From assembly GCA_029953675.1 (NCBI GenBank), contig JAMWBK010000003.1:2976001-3040000 (forward strand): DNA of 64,000 nucleotides. Direction: 5' to 3'. The translations under genes and the position numbers were made by a program. Position 1 is the first letter of the stretch. Each line of letters starts with the position of its first letter. The notes beneath the pieces are model-generated. The model was not told the origin of the DNA and searched no databases. It saw only the letters and a list, made by a program, of their open reading frames with translations. Below, piece by piece: positions 40,459-56,197 of this stretch. Source of the stretch: Rhodosorus marinus CCMP1338 (lineage: Eukaryota; Plantae; Rhodophyta).

Positions 40459-42720
40459 ATGGAGGAGAATTTGTCCATTGCACAGCTGCAATGGAAGTGT
40501 ATTGAGGGGATTTTAACCTCATCTAGATTGGAGGAGGGTGATGAAGATGATGAGAACGGTTTGGATGGTGGATATGGTGGAGGACGCTTCGGAAGGCGTG
40601 GCTTTGATGAGGAGGACCGTGATGCGCCGCCAAAGTGGAAGATTTTAGTATACGATGCGAATGGAAGGGATCTGCTGGCTACCTTGGCAAAAGTGTCGGA
40701 TTTACGGAAGCTTGGTGTTACCCTACATATGATGCTTGACTCCAGTAGACAGCCCATACCGGACGTCCCCGCTGTCTATCTGTGTTGTCCGACACAAGAG
40801 AACTTGCGGCTGATCGCCAACGACTGCAAGAGAAATCTCTACGATTCGTACCACCTGAATTTCACTGCGTCCATTCCACACGAGGTATTGGAAGAGTTTG
40901 CCGAGTCGCTAGCCTCACAACCGGACTTCTGCGCTTCAAACATCAAGAGAATCTACGACGGATACTGTAACTTTGTGTCACTGGAGAGCGACCTCTTCAC
41001 GCTCGATATTCCGGATTCGTATTCGCTCCTGAATGATCGAAATCTGAAGGTATGTCACACGAGCAGCTCAGCGCTTTTGGCTTCCGTACGGTTTTTGCCT
41101 CTAAGACATCGCGCTCTTTCTTATCAAATTGTGCAGGACGATGCAATCGAAGGCAACGTTGAGAGAATTGTAAGCAGTCTTTTTAGCGTCGTCGCAACAA
41201 TTGGACAGGTGCCAATTATTCGTGCTCAAACAGGCGGACCTGCGGAGATGATTGCGACGGCGTTGGACGAGCGAATCAGAGAATCGCTGTCTATAGCGAA
41301 TAATGTCTTTGCCGAGGCTTCGACAACCCAGAAGTATTCTGTTTCACCCCAGAGATTGCTCCTCGTCATCCTGGATAGGTAAGAAATCTGAAGCTTTTGT
41401 TGGTGTTCGAAATACCAACTACGTGGATATGGAGAGAACGCTGACATGTGTTCCTATCTGCACTTGGCCCGCATGCAGAAACATCAGTTTGCCTGTGATG
41501 CTCCACCACACATGGACATATCAAGCACTTTGTCACGATTTACTTCAGATGAAGCTGAATCGAGTCAGGCTCGAAATGAAGGAAGGGAGTATGTCCCAAA
41601 CGGGCCCCAGGCCGTGTGATTTGGACAAATCTGACGAGTTTTGGAAGGAAAATGGTGGAAGGCCGTTCCCAAAGGTTGCAGAAGCAGTGGAAAATGCGCT
41701 CAGCCTGTACAAGACAGAGGTTGAGGAGATTAACAGAAAAGCTGGGTCAGTTGGAGGTGCTGACCCACAGGTAGAGGGGGCAGACAAGCTTGCAAAGGCC
41801 CTTGAGAGTCTCCCGGAGCTCACGAAGAAGAAGCAGATTATTGACCTGCATACGAACATAGCGACCGCACTCCTGGATATCATCAAGGACAGAAACCTCG
41901 ATGCCTTCTTCCACGCCGAGGATCAGCTCATGTCCCACCGGGACATCGAAAAGGAAACCATCCAGAGCTTGTTAAGCACGTCCAAAGGAACCCCGGATGA
42001 TAGGATGCGTCTATTTATCATATACTTACTGTGCGCTGGCTCAACTGCTGAAATCGACTCGTTTCTCCCTACTCTCAAGAGTGCTGGCTGTGACTTGAGG
42101 GCGGTGAAATACGTCAAGGAGATTAAGACTTTCACTGACCAGATCGATGTCAAATCAACTTTGCAGAACATGAGCCTTCCATCCCGGAATTCCGTCCCCT
42201 CAACGGTATGCCTCATAATGAGCGTGGCGACGATCCGTGTGACAGACGATCAACTCACGTTTTCGCTTTCGCTAAACAGGTATCGGACGTTGGCCTAAGC
42301 AGCATGATGTCCTCAATTGTGGAGCACGGGAGCAGAGGCCTAACCCAGGTGGCGAATAATTTTAACAAGCTCATTTTGGACGAGGACAAGGCGCTAGTAT
42401 CTGGAAGGGTGGTGGAGGCGCTAATGGACCAGAAAGGACGAGAGGATGTGAGGGAGACGTACGCCTACTTCGATCCCCGGCAGCCGAAGAGGTCTGTTAC
42501 ACGGACCCAGAAACAGTTTCGAGAGGCTGTCGTATTCATGGTCGGTGGAGGAAACTATGTCGAGTATCAGAACATCAAGGACCATCTGAAGGGAGACAAG
42601 CACGTGCTCTATGGATGCACCGATCTTGTTACTGGGGAAAGCTTCCTGAGACAACTGGAGAAACTGTCGGGGGAGGCGAAGGAGGAGCCTTCCCAAGGTG
42701 AAGGGGCACCAACATCGTGA
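40459..42720 (+). CDS. SLY1: Sec1/Munc18 family protein Sly1 (SCFD1), 4 exons
   Basis: 'WKILVYD..GRDLLA..KVSDLRKLGVTLH', 'RQPIPDVPAVY', 'LLVILDR', 'HHTWTYQAL.HD', 'VFMVGGGNYVEYQN', 'YGCTDL'. Confidence 0.93.
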
Positions 42721-43138: not shown

Positions 43139-44426
43139 TCACAATATGTTTAGCGCGAGCTCGTAAGCATGGGTTAGTCTATTACATACACAGGCTCCAG
43201 ACAACGGGTAGTTTGAGACCGAAAGGGTGTCTTCAACCCAGTCCGCTTCAACCTTGTAGGCGGCAATGGAAACCCAGAAGCACTTCGGTTAGCACGACAT
43301 CGGCGTCTGTTCTCGTAGTTCGTGATTCAGTCCTCCTCACCTTTCCTTTAGCCATCGCCCCGATTACGTAAACAACACTCTCACCTTCCCGGGTCTCAAC
43401 GACTTCCTTTGCGTGGTCCACAACATTCACCATCTTCTCGCTATTGAACGAGAATGCTAAGGTTTCCAAGGAACAGCGACAAAGACGGTCAGTTTGGACG
43501 GATTGAAGTAACACTTAAAAGCATCTGTAGCTCTCAAAACTCTTATGCTCAGGAGATTTTTTGCTTACCAAACTTTGCACTACCGACTGGCAGATGTGAA
43601 GTTACCGGGTTTCTAATCACCTTCATGAGCGTGTCCTGACTGTTAGTTGCTCTAATCTTGAACTTGCTTAGGAGCTCAGCTGATAGTAGATCGAGGGACG
43701 ATAGTTTGCAGAGATCAGTGAACTTGGATCACTATTTGATGCGAGAGAGTATGTGCAGAGGTTGTTTGCTACCCATGAGCCCGGAGAAACGTCGGAAAGT
43801 CCTAGGAATTCGGAGTTGTGGATGAAGCTCAATCAGGACGTTCTTGCTGGTACGAACGTATACTTGAAGGTGACCGCTCTTGTTCAACGGACTGTCGAGG
43901 AGAGCAAGGAGGCACTGCAGAATGAAGCTTTGTCGGTCAGGGAGTGAAATACCTCCGATCGTCCGGATTTTAGTTCTAATTACCTGGTGAGCGACGTCTG
44001 GTCGGACCTCTGCTGGATCTTTTCCGCTACGCTTTATAATGCCCTTATGCTCGTCCGCGGCGAGAAGCGTAGATCCTGATCCACGTTGCCTCTTTACAAC
44101 CTCGAGGTTGGCGCAGTCCAGTACAACAATCACCTATAGCAAAAGTAGCAGACGGTGCTTTCCGTTCTGTCAGTTACAAGGTTTGGCTTTCGATATACAA
44201 ATGTAAGCATGGGCGTCGTGGTCGGACAGACCTTCTTCACGGAAGTTTCCGGAGCTACTGCCGAAGCCAAACCAGCGTCGCTGTCATCTAGCTGCCCAGC
44301 ATCATTTCCATCCAGAATCGCCTTGTACATAGACGCGGACTGCTTCCTTTCTTCCTTCCTCTTCTTCCGTCTCATTTGCCCGTCATCAGCATCCTTGGAT
44401 TCACGTTTTCGAACACCAGACTTCAT
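43139..44426 (-). CDS. EMG1: 18S rRNA pseudouridine N1-methyltransferase Nep1/Emg1 (about 5 exons)
   Basis: 'VRPDVAHQ|[14 protein letters not shown]', '[21 protein letters not shown]', '[10 protein letters not shown]', '[16 protein letters not shown]'. Confidence 0.92.
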
Positions 44427-45372
44427 ATCGATTCCACAGTTCAGATGTGCGTTGCAAACCTATTCGTTTTTCATTCCTTGCTCACCATGTATTTTCCTTG
44501 AAGACTTCCTCCTAAGGCGAAATCCTTATAGGCTTATCGATGACAATCAATCCGAAAATCTGATGAGCGAATGCCGCCGACGGTGTTATTAGTGTTCATC
44601 CTCTTTAAAGAAGAGTCAGAAAGCTCAATGTCTTCGCGGCTCGGGATCATATGGATCGACTCTTTTCGTTTAGGACGAGTGTATGTAAAGATCAGCGTCA
44701 GAAAACTACATTATTGAACGTCTTTCTAAGAATTAGGATCTCTGTCTGTCTTCCTGAAGAAAACTTCATCACTAAAAGCCGTCGTCGCGGAAGTGAACCT
44801 TTTTGAGTGTGACAAGAAGATCTCTGTCCGCATGACGAGCTTATATTGTCTGTCTTCTTCCTCACGAAACATAGCCTTTCGACTAGTGAACAATGGAAAA
44901 GATGGGTTAGGTAAGTTGTAGCATGTTGAGCATCCCTTCACAACAGGAATTTCGGTCTGCTTTGTTGACTAGCAACAGCCAAGTGCTTAGCTTCGCGTAT
45001 GAGGAGAGATCAGTTGGGAGTGAAGCTAGATTTCTGTTTGAAGCTCCAAGACAGTACTCTACTGTACGAGGAGGACAGCTTGGGCTGTTGGTTGGAGGAG
45101 CTTCATATAGGAGTGGGAAAGGAATGTCGGACTGGTTTGATTTCTGGTTTAGAAGATTAAGACTTCTACGACGAGTTTGTAATCGCTGATGGAGTGTTTC
45201 TGATGGACTGTAGTCGATAGAATGGAGAGCGAGCTTTGAGTTTGACGGAAAAGGGGTCTAGTTCTGTGGTTTGTTTGTAGGATGTACTTGGTTTGGTGTA
45301 GAATTCCGAAGGGCCAACCTGTTTATGGATTTGAAATGATTTTGTTGGTTGAGGGTTGCATTGTTTGGAGGA

Positions 45373-46210
45373 ATGATGAGCTCGAAAAGGAGAGGTAGAG
45401 AGCGGAGAAGTGAATCCGATGGCGTTGTTGAGGATCTTGAGGATGGCGCACATCACGAGGAGGGAAATGGTGATGAAACGAGCAACAGGATATTAGAGGA
45501 TGCGTACATGGTTGTGGAGGGACTGGAGACAGCTCCGTATGTGGAGGACATTCGATTATTGATTTTGAGCGCGCTCAAGAGAGAATCTCCGGATGAGATC
45601 GCTACTATAGCTGATGCATGGAAGGATATGAAGTTCTCCTACATTTACTTTTCCAATCCTACCGTTTTGGTGAGTTCTCCAACCCGTACTCAGGATGTAG
45701 CACCGCATCTGATAGTTTGCCAATGCATGATTGTTCTTTAACCCTTTTGATCTTGTCTTGACGTTTTGTTCGTTTCCATCACCTTCGCGCTGGAAGACGC
45801 GTGTCGAATTCCTTCAGTGTTTGTATCAGGAGACAATATCACTTGTTCGGGAACCACAAAAGCTGCTTCATACAAACACCTCAGACGAGCGGGTTAGCAA
45901 CGTTTCAATGAATCTCCTCGTCCTCCTCTTCGAATGTCAACCTCATCGAAACACTGCAAAGGAAGCGAAGATCAGAATAGACAAAAGCATATGGATCGAG
46001 CTAAAAAGCAAGCCACAAACTACCCATCTACTTCAGCAAGATGCTTATGTACTCGTAGTGTCATCTTACCTTGTTGCTGGACCCGCAGCGGCGCAGAAGA
46101 ATCTCGAGATCCGATCGAAACGTCCACTTACCCGTGCACACATGTCGCAAACTTACGGTGCTCGTGATCAAAATTTGGCGGAAATGCTCTTAATATTTCC
46201 GTTTGATTAA
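45373..46210 (+). CDS. SNAPC1: snRNA-activating protein complex subunit 1 (SNAP43)-like, 2 exons
   Basis: 'WKDMKFSYIYFSNP', 'FLQCLYQETI', 'LLFECQP', 'KIRIDKSIW' resemble the SNAPC1 N-terminal domain as I recall it from plant and animal proteins. Intron 45670-45796. Confidence 0.65.
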
Positions 46211-46982: not shown

Positions 46983-49730
46983 CTACAGCTTTCGATCGTA
47001 GTACCTCTGAAATGTTGCTTGAATGCGTTTTTCCTTTAGCTCTTGTAATTCCTCTGGTGTCATTTCACTCTCTGGCTTTTCGTTTGCGTTGTCGTCGCCT
47101 TTCAATACAGAGGTTACTGGTTCAGCAATCTTTTGAATAAACTTGGATATCAAATCCCGTTTCCGCATTTTTTTTGAGTTGCTCCCGGAAGTCCCATCGT
47201 CATCTTCATCGTCCTCTAGGTCTTCTGGATTGATTTCATTTCCATCCTCATCCACGTAAACATATGCGACAGTTTCACCATTCTCGTCAACCTCGTAATC
47301 ACTTGGGTCCATCTCATTCCCATCCTCATCAACGTAGACAACTGCGACATCTTCATCTGCGTCGGTAGTTGCACTATACGCGGACTCGTCAACTTCGTTT
47401 CCATCCTCATCTACGTAAACATATTGCACAGCTTGACCTGCCTCGTCAATCGCATATGCAGATGGGTCTAGTTCATTTCCATCTTCATCTACATACACGT
47501 ATTCTGCTTCTTCCTCGAGCGATTTGTCGGAATCCTCCGCAGACGTTGTGAGTTTTCTGACAAGTCGAGAAAACATGTCCCTCTTCCTTTCTCTGGACTC
47601 CTTGATAGTTGTGAGCTCTTCCGTCAAGTTCTCCGATACATTTTCAACTTTTACATTTTCCGATAGGAGCTTCTCGTCTTTTTTCTGGCCACCTGACGGT
47701 ACGAACTCCGGTTTCACGTCCTTGGTTTCAGTTTTCACGGCTTCAACTGTTTCTACAACTTTCTCTTCAACCTTGGCTACGGGCTCTTCCTTCACTTTCT
47801 TCGGCTCTGCAATTAGTGCTTCGACTTCTTCATTCTCGGATTTTGCTTCCTCTTCCTCCGAATCCTCCGAAACAGAAGGTTCAGATGAGCGGTTGCCCAA
47901 CAGCCGAGAAAATATGTTCTTTCGCTCTTCTCTATCGTCGGTGGCGGGAGTGACCTCGTCTGCCACGTCCTCCGCCACGGATGCAGCAGCTAACGGCTCC
48001 TCAACCACAGTCTTGGGGATGTCAGGCAAAACTGCTTTCACCTTTGGTTCAGGAGTCTTAGTTTCAGCCTTTTCGGGTTCTGGTTTCTGGTAATCTTCCG
48101 CCGCATCCTCCTCCGCCTTCTCTTCCTCCGCCTCTTCCGATTCGGGCTTTGGAGTTCCGAAAATACTCTTCAACAGTGAGAATGCGCCCACCTTTTTGGT
48201 TTCCGTCTCGACGTCCTCGCTGGACGGGAAATCTTCCTCCTTCTCAGTCTCGGCCTTTGTATCCACGACCGCCGGTTGTGGGACCTCCAACTTCGGCTCC
48301 AACTTCGGCTCCGGCTCCGGCTCCGGTTCCGGCTCGGGTTCTGGCTGCAGTTCCTGCTGTTGCTCCTCCTCCTCATCTGGTTCTGGCTCTTTCTTTGACC
48401 ACAGGCGTTGGAAAAACCCTGGCTTCTCTGAAGCCTTTTCCTCAGTATCAGATTCCTCTGCCGCGATCGTCTCCCCTACTTTCTCCTCCGCTTTCTCAAC
48501 CACCTTTTCAACGGTCTTCTCCGTTGCTGTCGCTCCCGACGGAGAACTGGGCTTCCAGGAAGGTTGAGCTACTCGCAATTTTTCTTTCACTTCCACCTCG
48601 ACAGCTTCTCCTTCAAGGACAGCACTCTGCTTTCCGACAAACATTGAGGTCGTTCCTGCTAGCAGCATGAAAGCGCCGGCACCAGCAGCGTAATACTGTT
48701 GAGACGAGCGGAGAAGAATGACAGAATAGAGCATTAGACTCATTGGAAAATGCTGTCTTGCATTCCGGTGTTTCAACTATTCTTGCAACATCCTCAACAA
48801 ATCTGGGTATCATCTAGGGTTACTTGAACGAAACCTGCAGATCGTCTTGGATCGGATTGTGGAATACAAAGCGTAGCTCTACTAATGAAGAAGCAGCATG
48901 CAAGACACTCTGATGTATGAAGCTCCCTTACCGTCCCCATAATACAGAGTGCGCTCATGATGAGCCCCGACAGGCCTATACCGACCAATATTGAGATAAA
49001 CGCAGGAAGCGCATTCATTCCTAGGACATACGCGACCATTGTGCCAGTCCAGGCGCCCGTTCCTGGCAGGGGAATTCCCACGAACAGGGCAAGCGCTATA
49101 AGCCGCTTGCGTGAATCTCCAAAGTCTTTAGAAAGGGTAGAGATTGCCATTCAGATGGGGAAACTCTGCGAAAGGGGGATTTCTCAGCCTGCATTTCGGC
49201 CACAGTCGCATACCTTCGGCTAGAGATCGAGCTCGCTTTACAAGTCCACCAATAAGCTGTCTCACGATTTTCATCCTCAGTGCGAAAAAGAGGGGAATGA
49301 CGGGGAGAAAGTTACCGAGGACACAAGTATAGTAGATGGTTAGGGGATGGAATCCCATCAAGTATCCTATGGGAACTCCACCACGTAGCTCGACTATTGG
49401 AAGCGCGGAGATTGCCGCAAGTACCAATTGATCGGAAAGTCCCTATGGATGAACAAAAGACGAAACCGGTCAGATCCAGAAAGATCTATACAGTTCTCAA
49501 GCTGGAGATCCTATAGATTCAATGCTCACCCATCGAGTACTCAAGTATTTTGCAATATCCAGCGAAGTAGACGCAACGGCGCGTGCAGGAAGAAACGCAC
49601 CAACAACACCAGCAACACCCTTAGCAGCTTTGGTCACAGCCACTTTCTTCTCCTTCTTCAACGCACATGTCACCGTAAGCCGGCGTTTTAACCGAGGCCT
49701 CGCAGCCCCCGGAGCAACAAATCCGGTCAT
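46983..49730 (-). CDS. Plastid 'putative small multidrug export' (PF06695/COG2426-like) membrane protein, apparently fused to a ~570-aa acidic repetitive tail (4 exons)
   Basis: Transit peptide MTGFVAPG..., 'ISALPIVELRGGVPIG', 'LGNFLPV', 'LALFVGIPLPGTGAWTG'. Donor at 48931 splices in phase 0 to a strong polypyrimidine acceptor at 48696, supplying the last TM (YYAAGAGAFMLL) and continuing to 46983. The family call is strong; the fusion is inferred. Confidence 0.7.
47235..47505 (-). repeat. Four ~27-aa (Y/V)VYVDEDGNE protein repeats
   Basis: EYVYVDEDGNELDP / QYVYVDEDGNEVDE / VVYVDEDGNEMDP / AYVYVDEDGNEINP in the translated ORF. Confidence 0.9.
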
Positions 49731-52155: not shown

Positions 52156-53575
52156 ATGGGGATGCATGGCAAGGATTTAGTTCAGTTCGCAGTAAGCATA
52201 CTAATCCACGGGACCCTCGCTGAATCCAACTTCTGACCACATCGAATTTGTGAAACAAGCAGGAACAGGGAAACGTTCGAGGTCTGATAGAAAGTGCTGT
52301 AGAATGCGACTTGGCAGAGTTTAGGTGGAAGGACGGCCGGAGCCTACTGCACCTAGCAAGCGCAGCTGGTCAGCTACAGAGTTGTCGTACGCTAATCCAG
52401 ATAGGTGTAGATATTAACGCACGAGAGAGGAAGCATCTTCGGGTAGGCTTGTCATATGCTTTTCTCACTTCGTCTTAAAGGGGGACCAGCCTTCTGAACT
52501 TGTGCATGGGCATTCGTCAGACTCCCCTTTACGAAAGCGCTGCCTCGGGTCACAACGACGTCGTTCAGGAACTCCTTCAATTCGGCGCGAAGGTTAATCT
52601 TGCGAAGAGTGGGGAATGGACTCCACTTATGGTCGCGGCGAGCAAAGGTTTTCCGGACGTCGTACAATCCTTGATATCGCATCGAGCGAGGTTGGACCTG
52701 TTCAATTCTGAAGGTTTCGGGGCTCAAATCCATCTTTTTTTAAAACCAAAACGAGTCGCCTTTCTCAACGTTTCCCTGACTCGTGCTACATCTTCACCTA
52801 GGGGCTTCAGCTCTACACCTTGCCGCTCGTAATGGCAATGAGCACGTAGTGAGGCTTATCCTCGATCACGATGCTTCCTGTCGACTTGTAAAGTCAGTGA
52901 ACCGCGTAGGCAAGACGCCACTGTTTCACGCATGCTACAGAGGGAACATGAAAGCTATTGAGCTTCTGATTGATTCTGGATCCGACCTAATGCACCGTGA
53001 TAGTGGACGGTCAACAATTCTGCATGAAGCGTGTTCGCAGGGTCAACGTGAGGCCGTTAAGCTTCTTCTTACGAAAGCCGGCGAAATGGGATTGTGTTCT
53101 GAGCTCACTTCCGCGCAAGATGCCATCGGTAAGGCGTGCATTTCGGTCTACCTTTCAGCGAAAGGCCGTGGTCTGGCGGGCACACTGTGTTGCCCTCCAA
53201 GAGTAACCTTCGATGACAAGTCAAAGTCGACCTGCATCAGTTGTTTGGCAACATGCATTCTCCTTCGTGGATTAACTGGTGTATCCCTTTGGAGGGCTTT
53301 TAAGAGCTTTCCCGGCACGTTCTAAGCGGATACAATGTTCTAATCTCGCCTTTCTGCGTCTCTCGGCATGAACCGGAACAGGCGACACGCCCCTACACTC
53401 CGCTGTGGCCGGTGAGAGCGTGCAATGTATTCGACTCATGCTTGAAGCCCCAGGAGCAGATCAGTACGTGAAGAACAAACGATCGAAGACTCCGTATGAG
53501 TTGGCGGTCTCTCGAAAGTCGGACACTATTGCTGAGATCTTGCTTTCCGGTAGATCCTGTCGAAATCTGCGCTAG
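52156..53575 (+). CDS. Ankyrin-repeat protein (about 5 exons; both ends uncertain)
   Basis: Repeats 'GRSLLHLASAAG', 'TPLYESAASG', 'TPLMVAASKG', 'SALHLAARNG', 'TPLFHACYRG', 'TILHEACSQG', 'TPLHSAVAG', joined by frame-consistent GT-AG introns. Confidence 0.85.
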
Positions 53576-54713: not shown

Positions 54714-56197
54714 TCACACTGCGGATACTGATCCGTAGAAATCATTGGACAGTGGTGGAGGCAGTTCGCCTATTACCCTCTTGCATATTGGGCATGAGGA
54801 GGACTGCAGCAGCCAAGGATCAATACAGTCTTTGTGATATACATGATTGCAGGCCAGTTGTCGAGCTGTCTGTCCAGACTCGAAATCTAACGAAAGAACC
54901 GACGAGAACGATAGACATTAGTACGCTGGGTGCCCATGCCGGATGCCGGGATCGGTACATACCGTCGAGACATATGGCACAGCACAAGGGCTCATCCGAA
55001 TCTGACGCACTTTGAACTTGCTGTCCAGAGCTGGATGGTGCGCTGGAGTCACCGAATATGAAGCTTCCCAACTTCGAGATTGCATCATATCGAGCGTTCA
55101 AATTCCTATTTCTTCGCTTGTAGCGAACCACGTTGAAACCACATTGGAGCAAAATCCAAAGCGCCATACCCCGCATCATCGCCCAAGTGAGTACATCCTT
55201 TCCATAGTCAATATCAAAGTTCGCTTCGCCTTCCTCCGTGAAAGAAACTGTAAGGGCCTTTGTACGGCAGGCTGCTATCTTACGCCATTCGGTGTAAGTT
55301 ATCATGACAGAGGGGATCTTCACATCCAACTCAGACATGCTCCCGTTCAATTTCATGTTCCAAAGTCTGTCACCGTCCTTTTTACAATTCACGATAACCG
55401 CCCCGAGTGCTCCACTCTCCTGCATGTTGAGTACCTTAGTGCCGAAATCACAACTACCTCTCGCAATCACCTGTGTCAACGGAAGAACAGGAAAAAATGC
55501 CTGTTAACGACATTTGTGGCCGCCGGTCCAGATCTCTGGAATTGGCTGTCTTACGGCAATTTTGGATTTCACTGCTTTGAGATCGTCCGGTTCGGTCAGC
55601 GGCTTGCAGCCTTTTGTTTTTTCAGCAAAGGAGAGCAGCTTGTGAGCCCGGGAACGCAGGACCATGCAGTTTGCTGGGTTTCTCACCGTCGTGTAGCAGC
55701 TCAATCTCAGGACTCGCGCTAGCATTATCATCTCGAGTGCTTGCTGGGACCGAGCGGGAAGACTTCTTCAAAACTCTTCTAGCTGAAGGCCATGGCGTTC
55801 TCCCTACAAGATATGCAAGAACCGTGCGATCCGTAGTGCCAATCCTATTCACAAGCCATGATTTCCACGATGAAGCATCCTGCTTTGATTCGTCCATGCT
55901 TGGGTATGGCGCAAAAACAGGCTCATCGTTGACGTTGCTTTCCGTAGGCTTTGGCCCGAATAGGGCCGAAGCGTGGCTTACTACATGCACTCCGCCACAC
56001 CTGGGTTAAGGTACACGCAGAACAGAAGGGAAGGAATTCGTCTGAGTGCTCTCTACGCGGTCCCCAATCGCGGTCCACCCTCAGATCGTATGAATTTCGA
56101 GCAGGGCTTACTCATTAGGGGCGTTCACGATCAGACACGCCGTCCGATCTATGAGAACCAATAACGCTATCCAGCGCACCACGTTACCACTCCACAT
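54714..56197 (-). CDS. Signal peptide - PA domain - TM - RING-H2 E3 ligase (RMR/RNF13-like), 4 exons
   Basis: MWSGNVVRWIALLVL signal, PA 'IARGSCDFGTKVLNMQESGALGAVIVN..VKIPSVMI', a TM segment, and RING-H2 'CAICLDDFESG..LACNHVYHKDCIDPWL...CPICK'. Confidence 0.9.

Follow-up and report, generated by a model that had tools for sequence, protein, structure and literature searches.

A single four-exon gene in Rhodosorus encodes a plastid-type PF06695 membrane protein with a long acidic, repetitive tail

The minus strand of the window, by which we mean the whole 64,000-nucleotide stretch of Rhodosorus DNA analysed here, carries four exons (49730-49530, 49442-49214, 49125-48932 and 48695-46983) that join into a coding sequence of 2337 nt and a predicted protein of 778 aa. 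All three introns are GT..AG and the frame is open throughout once they are removed; exons 1-3 (624 nt in total) leave phase 0, and exon 4, at 1713 nt, contributes 570 codons and the TAG at 46985-46983. A stop codon lies in frame 7 codons 5' of the ATG at 49730. The gene and the main divisions of its product are as follows.

49530..49730, minus strand: exon 1, aa 1-67, with the ATG at 49730-49728; 93% identity to the R. marinus ortholog
49443..49529, minus strand: intron 1, 87 nt, GTGAGC...CATAG; STRW/GLSD gapless in the R. marinus transcript product
49214..49442, minus strand: exon 2, aa 68-144, with re-entrant loop 1 (PIVELRGGVP), a membrane helix bearing the GN..P motif, and a basic extramembrane loop
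49126..49213, minus strand: intron 2, 88 nt, GTATGC...CTAAAG; SLAE/DFGD continuous in the 764-aa R. marinus product
48932..49125, minus strand: exon 3, aa 144-208, with re-entrant loop 2 (FVGIPLPGTGAWTG) and the next membrane helix, ending in ALCIMGT
48959..49391, minus strand: match to PF06695 (Sm_multidrug_ex; COG2426), aa 85-199, by Pfam; in exons 2 and 3, with intron 2 inside it
48696..48931, minus strand: intron 3, 236 nt, GTAAGG...pyrimidine tract...CAG, containing ATG 48745 in frame; one R. marinus isoform keeps this intron
48633..48695, minus strand: start of exon 4, last membrane helix, aa 209-229, YYAAGAGAFMLLAGTTSMFVG, from homolog alignment and AlphaFold2
46986..48632, minus strand: acidic tail, aa 230-778, 549 aa, 61.5 kDa, pI 4.24, net charge -88

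The details of the junction between exons 3 and 4 are those described in the initial annotation, which had read the locus from its letters alone. Exon 3 closes with GCA CTC TGT ATT ATG GGG ACG (ALCIMGT), last base 48932, followed by GTAAGG at 48931-48926; the strong pyrimidine-tract acceptor cattcttctccgctcgtctcaacag ends at 48696, and exon 4 opens at 48695 with TAT TAC GCT GCT GGT (YYAAG...) in the same phase, running from there to its stop. The alternative start that had been flagged near 48745 is also present, as an ATG in the exon-4 frame 16 codons 5' of the acceptor, within an open frame that begins after a stop some 29 codons upstream. Reading through the donor instead of splicing leads to a stop after 45 codons and a product of 253 aa. 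A search against Rfam gave no match anywhere in the window, intron 3 included.

Evidence for splicing comes from an ortholog in the Rhodosorus marinus transcriptome, UniProt A0A7S3EGZ6 (MMETSP Transcript_33084), a product of 764 aa with 74% identity overall and 95% in the membrane part. This product is collinear with the four-exon model over all three junctions, CIMGT/YYAAGAG included, and the occurrence of that exact junction in an orthologous spliced product indicates that the junction in the window is no in-frame accident. The two proteins have in common the residues at the exon junctions, five basic islands, four YVYVDEDGNE repeats and a C-terminal helix; they differ by several in-frame indels in the acidic spacers, the ortholog coming from another strain or species (dS ~0.33). 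L002, the sole JGI contig for the R. marinus transcript, starts 1 nt before exon 4; a break so close to that boundary is what a splice branch point should produce. When metagenome contigs were scanned with a degenerate DNA pattern for the junction formed by splicing (CIMGTYYAAGAGAFM), there were 0 matches, which, given where L002 starts, does not speak against splicing. Exact look-ups of two R. marinus products, P0006 (the 764-aa one) and P0001 (from Transcript_33090), gave no record in the contig index, and the three candidate products of the window are absent from the protein collection.

The competing gene model would divide the locus into a 253-aa PF06695 protein ending in intron 3 and a separate, signal-anchored acidic protein of 586 aa starting at ATG 48745. 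The window and R. marinus both have this ATG (MSLMLYSVILLRSSQQ versus MRLMLCSVILPLSLQQ), and an intron-retaining R. marinus isoform (Transcript_33090) does exist, in which the two pieces measure 243 aa and 571 aa. Both of these ORFs lie on that one transcript, however, which points to intron retention rather than to a second gene and makes a separate promoter unnecessary. Intron-retaining contigs are a common pre-mRNA by-product of transcriptome assembly and count against two products, as does the existence of the spliced 764-aa product; a downstream ORF on a shared transcript would moreover be poorly translated, and a membrane domain deprived of exon 4 would lose a helix found in all aligned homologs. 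The translations of intron 3 in the exon-3 frame differ fast between the two strains, the flanking exons being ~95% identical, and this too counts against two products. We therefore consider two products very improbable. The comparison shows one nuclear gene of four exons encoding a 778-aa protein, with splicing in the window deduced from the ortholog at the distance given above. The single chimera of about 780 aa that had been proposed, a PF06695 anchor bearing a long acidic and repetitive soluble tail, is thus upheld by the collinear ortholog, the shared transcript, the conserved helix of exon 4 and the AlphaFold2 model.

In the membrane domain, Pfam PF06695 is matched at E = 2.9e-27, with 96.1 bits against a cut-off of 30.7, over profile positions 1-121 of 121, and the motifs of the plastid/algal clade are all present: P82..E85-L-R-G..P91, G110-N111..P114 and F158-V-G-x-P-x-P-G-T-G-A-W169. 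Homologs were gathered with the membrane part as query, the whole protein having given 5 matches, swamped by low-complexity words; in alignments of 14 and 120 sequences (119 homologs) the motif columns P..ELRG..P, GN..P and PLPGTGAW are invariant or nearly so. The last helix, which follows the invariant G207, has an equivalent in all aligned algal homologs, in agreement with the earlier proposal that exon 4 supplies the final transmembrane segment. AlphaFold2 gives pLDDT >90 across aa 55-230, with helix-Pro-helix hairpins and a helix from aa 208; its secondary structure, read along the chain, has helix-break-helix arrangements at P82 and P162/P164 flanked by long helices.

The same motifs, PxxELRGxxP, GNxxP and PLPGTGAW, are found in canonical plastid PF06695 proteins such as Arabidopsis At2g02590/NP_178363, Galdieria Gasu2_59040 and Erythrolobus A0A7S0T582, whose sequences likewise contain the additional C-terminal helix and a short acidic stub at the C-terminus. 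They end 10-45 residues past the last helix, whereas the Rhodosorus protein continues for 549. The best 120 homologs measure 170-338 aa (median 290), against 778 aa here, so that the description of PF06695 proteins as small, all-membrane proteins stands for these relatives; it does not stand for the family at large, since fusions of PF06695 to ferredoxin-NADP reductase (FNR) of ~600 aa exist. Small size is a typical trait of PF06695 and not a criterion of homology.

PF06695 has been assigned to the DedA superfamily, with Arabidopsis NP_178363 named as a chloroplast member (bioRxiv 10.1101/2020.12.18.423352), and At2g02590 is among the plastid transporters listed in PMC2246286. The architecture of TMEM41B, VMP1 and bacterial DedA/YqjA, two facing re-entrant loops and membrane helices in the order re-entrant loop, membrane helix, extramembrane helix, re-entrant loop, membrane helix, fits the predicted secondary structure; the homology is remote and taken from the same study (bioRxiv 10.1101/2020.12.18.423352), PF06695 does not conserve DedA motifs 1 and 2, and scramblase or flippase activity is known for no PF06695 protein. 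No PDB entry was matched by the full model in Foldseek at E <= 0.001, and those ranked highest were unrelated transporters (E ~0.2-1). The N-terminal third is a canonical plastid-type PF06695 domain, assigned to the DedA superfamily in the cited work, with two re-entrant loops and membrane helices predicted.

The presequence encoded by exon 1 (MTGFVAPGAARPRLKRRL) begins MTGFVAP..., with Phe at position 4 and a basic, hydroxylated stretch behind it; a weakly hydrophobic helix at aa 39-57 follows, ending AVA/S, after which the mature protein starts. From the family context and the known features of rhodophyte transit peptides, such as an aromatic residue close to the N-terminus, we infer that this is a plastid transit peptide. 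After import into the plastid, the protein would be inserted into the thylakoid or inner-envelope membrane, its tail facing the stroma. Several observations bear on this orientation. The basic loop at aa 122-150 contains 9 K/R, which we counted for the stromal side; TMEM41B has an experimentally determined topology of 4 TMH and 2 re-entrant loops with both termini cytosolic (bioRxiv 10.1101/2020.12.18.423352); and in other algae FNR, a stromal enzyme, occupies the same C-terminal position behind an acidic linker. These PF06695-FNR fusions (P0002-P0004, and the truncated P0120 and P0102), found in marine eukaryote metagenomes and metatranscriptomes, have, like the Rhodosorus protein, PF06695 as N-terminal anchor and, past an acidic linker, a soluble module for the stroma; that module, however, is a folded enzyme (PF00175) where Rhodosorus has a disordered acidic repeat tail, and their membrane part is diatom-like, not rhodophyte. 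Acidic C-terminal stubs are already present in the short homologs (49/60).

The tail is 21% Glu and 29% Asp+Glu, and is mostly predicted to be disordered, AlphaFold2 giving pLDDT <50 over most of it; the helices and hairpins modelled within it are weakly supported because effectively two sequences could be used for this region. A phmmer search, run exhaustively over 1.84 billion representatives, returned 10 matches to the tail, nine of them to the repeat motif only and one being an R. marinus fragment, and the tail appears on this evidence to be lineage-specific. Between the two Rhodosorus lineages it is conserved and, judged from its substitutions, under constraint: dN/dS against R. marinus is 0.44 overall (dS 0.33), falling to 0.16-0.27 at both ends, the repeats and C-terminus included, and reaching 0.4-0.7 in the spacers, and identity is 90% in the repeats, 81% at the C-terminus, 68% in the basic-island windows and 61% in the spacers. 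Neither lineage has lost the 570-codon frame, all indels between them being multiples of three. At the DNA level the tail contains microsatellite-like arrays and a duplication spaced by 159 nt. Its recognisable elements are these.

48393..48428, minus strand: basic amphipathic island 1, EKPGFFQRLWSK, aa 298-309; AlphaFold2 helix 302-308, core identical in R. marinus
48162..48197, minus strand: basic amphipathic island 2, KKVGAFSLLKSI, aa 375-386; predicted helix 379-387
47898..47933, minus strand: basic amphipathic island 3, REERKNIFSRLL, aa 463-474; from sequence properties
47550..47585, minus strand: basic amphipathic island 4, KRDMFSRLVRKL, aa 579-590; the tail's top helical hydrophobic moment (0.86), inside predicted helix 559-591
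47220..47513, minus strand: four YVYVDEDGNE(x)D hairpin repeats, aa 603-700; predicted beta strands, pLDDT ~55-75
47097..47174, minus strand: basic amphipathic island 5, KKMRKRDLISKFIQKIAEPVTSVLKG, aa 716-741; predicted helix 720-739
46986..47066, minus strand: C-terminal helix EELQELKEKRIQATFQRYYDRKL, aa 752-778; AlphaFold2 helix 755-777, pLDDT ~90, followed by the TAG

The five islands are the only positively charged stretches of the tail, and they coincide with predicted helices. Under a criterion of positive net charge together with 4 or more large hydrophobic residues per 12, five windows qualify as basic and hydrophobic at once, where 0.32 would be expected; five were reached in 0/5000 shuffles, with the criterion having been set after the motifs had been seen. 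As wholes, the island windows are barely better conserved than the spacers (68% versus 61%). Their pattern of basic-G/x-F-hydrophobic-x-R-L-aromatic/hydrophobic, as in KPGFFQRLWSK and RKNIFSRLLGN, is shared with targeting helices of the MinD/FtsA type; the membrane-targeting sequence of E. coli MinD is KGFLKRLFGG (PMC5471200). The likeness is one of function, an analogy without homology, and here five copies lie in an acidic disordered chain that membrane helices already anchor.

The hairpin repeats derive from a duplicated 53-aa double unit whose two 123-nt DNA copies are 73% identical, and with a dN/dS of 0.16-0.46 against R. marinus they are the most conserved part of the tail. Their V-Y-V-D-E-D-G-N-E-I hairpin is shared with the first ~17 profile positions of the MucBP and SSSPR-51 domains of Gram-positive surface proteins, and with VYVDEDGN-repeat proteins such as Curtanaerobium WP_283170591; it is the first hairpin alone that matches, not the full domains of 48-63 residues. 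Membership of MucBP (PF06458; 15.2 versus 23 bits) or of SSSPR-51 (PF18877; 18 versus 27 bits) is rejected, both scores being below the cut-off and only profile positions ~2-20 being matched. Because the likeness to bacteria is confined to a motif of ~10 residues, a bacterial origin of the repeat through horizontal transfer is unsupported. Against PDB sequences the repeat found matches at E >= 0.087, and the C-terminal 203 aa used as a query for related loci recovered at least 7, those listed matching the VYVDEDGN motif alone.

What such a tail might do can be considered in several ways. An arm of this charge beside an anionic membrane could equally be a cation buffer or a docking platform. 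As a buffer, the tail would be a high-capacity, low-affinity store or sensor of Ca2+/Mg2+ at the plastid membrane, comparable to calsequestrin or to the acidic region of the thylakoid protein CAS, and the DEDGN turns might form more specific sites. The Asp+Glu content, net charge and pI of the tail suit such a role, as does the conservation of the repeat block; and D-E-D-G-N fits positions 1-5 of many EF-hand loops, which read D-x-D-G-[DN]. Yet no EF-hand or other calcium-binding family was matched at E <= 1, the loop D-E-D-G-N-E-L-D-P-S-A-Y has neither the Gly of loop position 6 nor the Glu of position 12, and the same motif is found in unrelated bacterial and fungal repeat proteins; as the five basic amphipathic islands would also be left without explanation, we regard the buffer as unlikely. 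A docking scaffold would recruit stromal proteins in trans, as the FNR fusions do in cis, the candidate partners being basic proteins, for instance phycobilisome linkers, FNR, or ribosomal and nucleoid proteins. That the C-terminus of PF06695 repeatedly carries a stromal enzyme behind an acidic linker is in favour of this idea, and both the conserved islands and the C-terminal helix, itself confidently predicted, resemble short linear interaction motifs. Known binding motifs, though, were not found: an IQ calmodulin-binding motif considered at the C-terminal RIQATFQRYYDRK is rejected, with no Pfam IQ match at E <= 10 in the window or in R. marinus, and no resemblance was recognised to the FNR-binding motif of Tic62/TROL. 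Sequence alone names no partner, and a scaffold of this kind also seems to us rather improbable.

The tail might instead have little specific function, being a low-complexity extension that replication slippage and duplication built up from the family's short acidic stub. The stubs on short homologs provide a starting point, the arrays and the spaced duplication in the tail DNA a means of growth, and the spacers, with a dN/dS of 0.5-0.7 and several indels between the strains, behave as such an extension would. Set against this are the 570-codon frame kept in both lineages through indels that are all multiples of three, the repeats at 90% identity, the dN/dS of the tail's two ends (0.16-0.27), and the placing of the five basic amphipathic islands, which is non-random and periodic; we consider it quite improbable that the tail is only an extension of this type.

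The explanation that we prefer as a whole, at a probability of roughly 0.4, is a single gene for a PF06695 anchor with a membrane-docking polyanionic stromal arm. Under this explanation the membrane domain would do what canonical PF06695 does, probably moving a lipid or small substrate like other DedA proteins. The five basic amphipathic helices (K/R-x-x-F-S-R-L-hydrophobic, MinD-like) would dock reversibly on anionic lipid of the same or a neighbouring membrane, and the Glu/Pro/Val/Lys-rich spacers of 60-130 residues, repelled from the anionic surface, would form loops between them. The outcome might be a tether or spacer which sets or senses the distance between membranes, or which holds the membrane domain at particular regions; the YVYVDEDGNE block and the C-terminal helix, being best conserved, would be where specific contact is likeliest, whether to another protein, to a cation or within the protein itself. 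For the tail taken separately, its role as an anchored polyanionic arm touching membranes at several points is put forward tentatively and with low confidence, although the proposal of a spacer or tether, already made in the initial annotation, is made more plausible by the islands. Comparable long acidic disordered domains, such as the A-domain of Toc159, calsequestrin-type regions and titin PEVK-like spacers, have in common with the tail an extreme Glu/Asp content, disorder, Pro/Glu/Val/Lys repeats and rapid indel evolution; they bear no sequence relationship to it, and act at other membranes, on other faces and with other partners.

A more far-reaching form of this explanation, which we offer as speculation with the odds well against it, is a new kind of plastid tether: a DedA-type lipid-handling domain would sit in one membrane while its arm of ~550 residues reached across the stroma and gripped the neighbouring one through its five helices, keeping the unstacked thylakoids of red algae at a set distance or forming an envelope-thylakoid contact for lipid supply. 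The C-terminus of plastid PF06695 proteins would then be a recurrent platform for stromal functions, FNR in some chromalveolate-type algae and the arm in Rhodosorus.

PF06695 is the least understood branch of a superfamily that elsewhere includes lipid scramblases or flippases (TMEM41B, VMP1 and bacterial DedA), and its plastid members are conserved from red algae to plants without an assigned function. A natural long-arm variant, considered along with the FNR fusions of other algae, points to a C-terminus in the stroma and suggests a location at the interface of membrane and stromal machinery. An arm that tethers or spaces membranes would be relevant to the even separation of red-algal thylakoids and to the delivery of lipid to them; if it does neither, the locus still yields a transcript-supported correction of gene models which split it in two. 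The architecture is uncharacterised but already in UniProt, where the unreviewed entry A0A7S3EGZ6 carries the automatic name "Small multi-drug export protein."

The gene under study lies on the minus strand, and its rebuilt coding sequence comprises four exons:

Exon 1: 49730-49530, minus strand, 201 nt
Exon 2: 49442-49214, minus strand, 229 nt
Exon 3: 49125-48932, minus strand, 194 nt
Exon 4: 48695-46983, minus strand, 1713 nt, TAG included
Intron 3: 48696-48931, minus strand; one assembled R. marinus transcript retains it

All three introns (87, 88 and 236 nt) start with GT and end with AG, and intron 3 has a GTAAGG donor and a long pyrimidine tract followed by CAG. With 624 nt in exons 1-3, exon 4 starts in phase 0, and splicing yields an open frame of 2337 nt for 778 aa, with an in-frame stop 7 codons upstream of the first ATG. 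If the intron 3 donor is skipped, 45 further codons precede a stop, giving a product of 253 aa. PF06695 is matched over its entire profile at residues 85-199 (96 bits against the Pfam cut-off of 30.7), and what the initial annotation had observed was accurate in all details. The locus is flanked by ordinary eukaryotic nuclear genes:

40459-42720, plus strand: Sec1/Munc18-family gene, multi-exon, at least 3 exon-sized ORFs jointly spanning Pfam Sec1 positions 1-575
43735-44133, minus strand: EMG1/NEP1 rRNA methyltransferase fragment
52783-53322, plus strand: ankyrin-repeat protein fragment
54823-55479, minus strand: PA-domain protein fragment

The ORFs at 45349-46207 (plus strand) had no Pfam match, no Rfam family was found across the whole window, and the GC content of the window is 44-56%.

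When the fused protein was used as query, the homolog search found P0001, a 571-aa Rhodosorus marinus transcriptome protein from another strain, whose N-terminus (MRLMLCSVILPLSLQQ/YYAAGAG...) starts inside the equivalent of intron 3. Listing the members of its 90% cluster added two proteins: P0006 (764 aa; UniProt A0A7S3EGZ6; Transcript_33084), which reads ...SALCIMGTYYAAGAGAFMLLAG..., is collinear with the four-exon model over three of three junctions and is 74% identical overall to the window protein, and P0007 (243 aa), in which the membrane part runs into the intron and to a stop (...CIMGTVRELHAP...). Since P0006 lies on Transcript_33084, while Transcript_33090 carries both P0007 and P0001, R. 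marinus has a spliced mRNA that encodes the fusion and a second, intron-retaining RNA that holds both pieces. The proposal that membrane part and tail form a single chimera is borne out by the spliced form, and the tail can be accounted for without a second promoter; two separate products in place of a fusion, as the pieces on Transcript_33090 might be read, are very improbable. Retention of intron 3 could be regulated alternative splicing or merely pre-mRNA; if translated, it would give the 243-aa form (253 aa in the window) without the last helix and tail. The intron translations of the two strains differ at once, while the flanking exons are ~95% identical. In the JGI re-assembly, the contig of the R. 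marinus transcript (L002) has its first base 1 nt before the exon-4 boundary, a point at which divergence between spliced and unspliced reads would make an assembly break; because of this start, a degenerate DNA pattern for the spliced junction had no match in the metagenome contig collection containing L002. L002:1-211 also has an indel, near 184-211, that puts it out of frame with the MMETSP protein P0006; the probable cause is an error of assembly.

With only the membrane part as query, thousands of PF06695 proteins were returned, and the best 120 were used for comparison; these come mainly from stramenopiles, haptophytes and red algae (including Erythrolobus, Galdieria and Cyanidiococcus) and are 170-338 aa long (median 290). 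The membrane part of the window protein is a regular PF06695 member. In every aligned homolog the invariant Gly207 is followed by an extra hydrophobic helix (consensus G-x-x-G-A-L-x-A-x-A-V-L), the protein stopping ~10-45 residues past this last helix, and a median of 71 residues follows the PGTGAW motif in the homologs versus 609 in the window protein. The equivalent helix here, YYAAGAGAFMLLAGTTSMFVG, is the first element encoded by exon 4, as the initial annotation had held, so a product ending in intron 3 would be without a conserved element of the family.

PF06695 has been assigned to the DedA superfamily, for which TMEM41B provides a verified topology: four membrane helices plus two re-entrant loops that face each other, the two termini being cytosolic (cis) (bioRxiv 10.1101/2020.12.18.423352). 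The predicted elements of the window protein match this order:

Residues 39-57: weak N-terminal hydrophobic helix
Residues 70-95: first helix-Pro-helix
Residues 100-123: membrane helix
Residues 125-145: basic helices
Residues 148-177: second helix-Pro-helix
Residues 182-206 and 208-229: two further membrane helices

Three independent arguments point to the stroma as the side of the tail. Besides the DedA topology itself, loop 122-150 has nine Lys/Arg and under that topology lies on the side of the tail, a side that the positive-inside rule makes stromal; and in other algae ferredoxin-NADP reductase (FNR), whose substrates are stromal, occupies the same C-terminal position. In these fusions a single uninterrupted ORF encodes the PF06695 membrane domain, an acidic (EA/ET)n linker and a complete FNR, an arrangement that would give FNR a membrane anchor of its own; P0002, P0003 and P0004 are ~600 aa long with the FNR placed where the window protein has its tail (P0002 is a single uninterrupted ORF at L003:1518-3359), and P0120 and P0102 are truncated versions. 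All five are of marine eukaryote origin, and their membrane part resembles that of diatoms. We infer plastid targeting from the presequence (MTGFVAP...), rhodophyte transit-peptide features and the plant homologs, with either the thylakoid or the inner envelope as host membrane. The plant proteins have been termed chloroplast proteins (bioRxiv 10.1101/2020.12.18.423352) or listed as plastid transporters (PMC2246286).

The tail (residues 230-778; 61.5 kDa, pI 4.24, 21% Glu, 8% Asp, net charge -88) contains no hydrophobic segment, and AlphaFold2, run on a 120-sequence alignment, gave pLDDT >90 for residues 55-230 and <50 over most of the tail. Its only positively charged islands are five amphipathic ones, spaced 77-137 residues apart:

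Island 1: residue 298, EKPGFFQRLWSK
Island 2: residue 375, KKVGAFSLLKSI
Island 3: residue 463, REERKNIFSRLL
Island 4: residue 579, KRDMFSRLVRKL
Island 5: residue 716, KKMRKRDLISKFIQKIAEP

Most overlap short predicted helices, and their pattern is similar to the membrane-targeting sequence of E. coli MinD, KGFLKRLFGG (PMC5471200). Under a criterion picked post hoc, composition-preserving shuffles contained a mean of 0.32 such windows and reached five in none of 5000 trials. Residues 603-700 hold four YVYVDEDGNE(x)D units, which originated by duplication of a 53-aa double unit and are predicted with moderate confidence as beta hairpins; the C-terminal helix is EELQELKEKRIQATFQRYYDRKL (pLDDT ~90). 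The intervening spacers have a high content of Glu, Lys, Val and Pro, with (EP)n runs. At 48285-48358 a microsatellite-like (GAGCCG)n / 12-nt + 24-nt array codes for an (EP)n-KLEPKLE stretch. In R. marinus the array is shorter, suggesting slippage as the driver of length change in the tail.

Comparison of the L002 nucleotide sequence with the window gene gave unequal conservation along the protein.

Protein identity between the two strains
Membrane part: 95%
Hairpin repeats: 90%
C-terminal helix: 81%
Basic islands (broad windows): 68%
Acidic spacers: 61%

Every indel preserves the reading frame, and for the tail overall dS is 0.33 and dN/dS 0.44. A largely neutral low-complexity expansion would sit most easily with the spacers (dN/dS 0.4-0.7); with 0.16-0.27 in the first segment, repeats and C-terminus, we consider it improbable for the tail.

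The window protein consists of an anchor and a polyanionic, disordered arm under constraint, which carries five basic amphipathic helices, the conserved hairpin repeats and the C-terminal helix. By analogy with MinD, the islands may dock onto anionic plastid lipid surfaces, from which the acidic spacers would be pushed off and loop out, the outcome being a multivalent tether or spacer that works reversibly, either between membranes or along a single one; alternatively, the arm might keep the DedA-type lipid-handling domain at particular membrane regions. We place the probability of this tether/spacer or holding-device class of mechanism at roughly 0.3-0.4. An arm so acidic might instead be a cation buffer or, on the stromal side, a docking scaffold for stromal partners, both unlikely, though slightly less so than neutral expansion; each of the three is compatible with tethering.

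Eukaryotic proteins commonly have long disordered extensions, and 49 of 60 homologs have a short acidic stub after the last helix, of which the tail looks like an enlarged version. An exhaustive phmmer search with the tail against 1.84 billion representatives gave ten matches only: one R. marinus fragment and nine limited to the VYVDEDGN motif, including a Curtanaerobium (Coriobacteriia) "MucBP domain-containing protein", a Funneliformis protein and very large bacterial repeat proteins. Scanning metagenome contigs with a tblastn-type search yielded nothing further on the tail among the matches listed, and within the collections covered the tail appears restricted to Rhodosorus. It is outside every described family; EF-hand, MucBP, SSSPR-51 and IQ were each tried as assignments and each rejected. 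No solved structure resembling the model was found in the PDB. UniProt already contains the architecture in an R. marinus entry that is unreviewed and was named automatically (A0A7S3EGZ6); it is absent from the papers retrieved on PF06695 and At2g02590. The fusion is genuine and conserved, a lineage-specific elaboration within a plastid membrane family that is poorly understood.

P0131 (Curtanaerobium respiraculi WP_283170591), P0135 and P0132 (Funneliformis mosseae CAG8679859), are small (V/I)VYVDEDGN(E/P)-repeat proteins without a signal peptide. In the bacterial P0131 and P0135 the N-terminus is basic (MFGIGKRKSKRS..., MLSLFKKKAK...) and the C-terminus amphipathic (...FDFKNWGK); like the algal tail, they combine acidic hairpin repeats with basic amphipathic ends.
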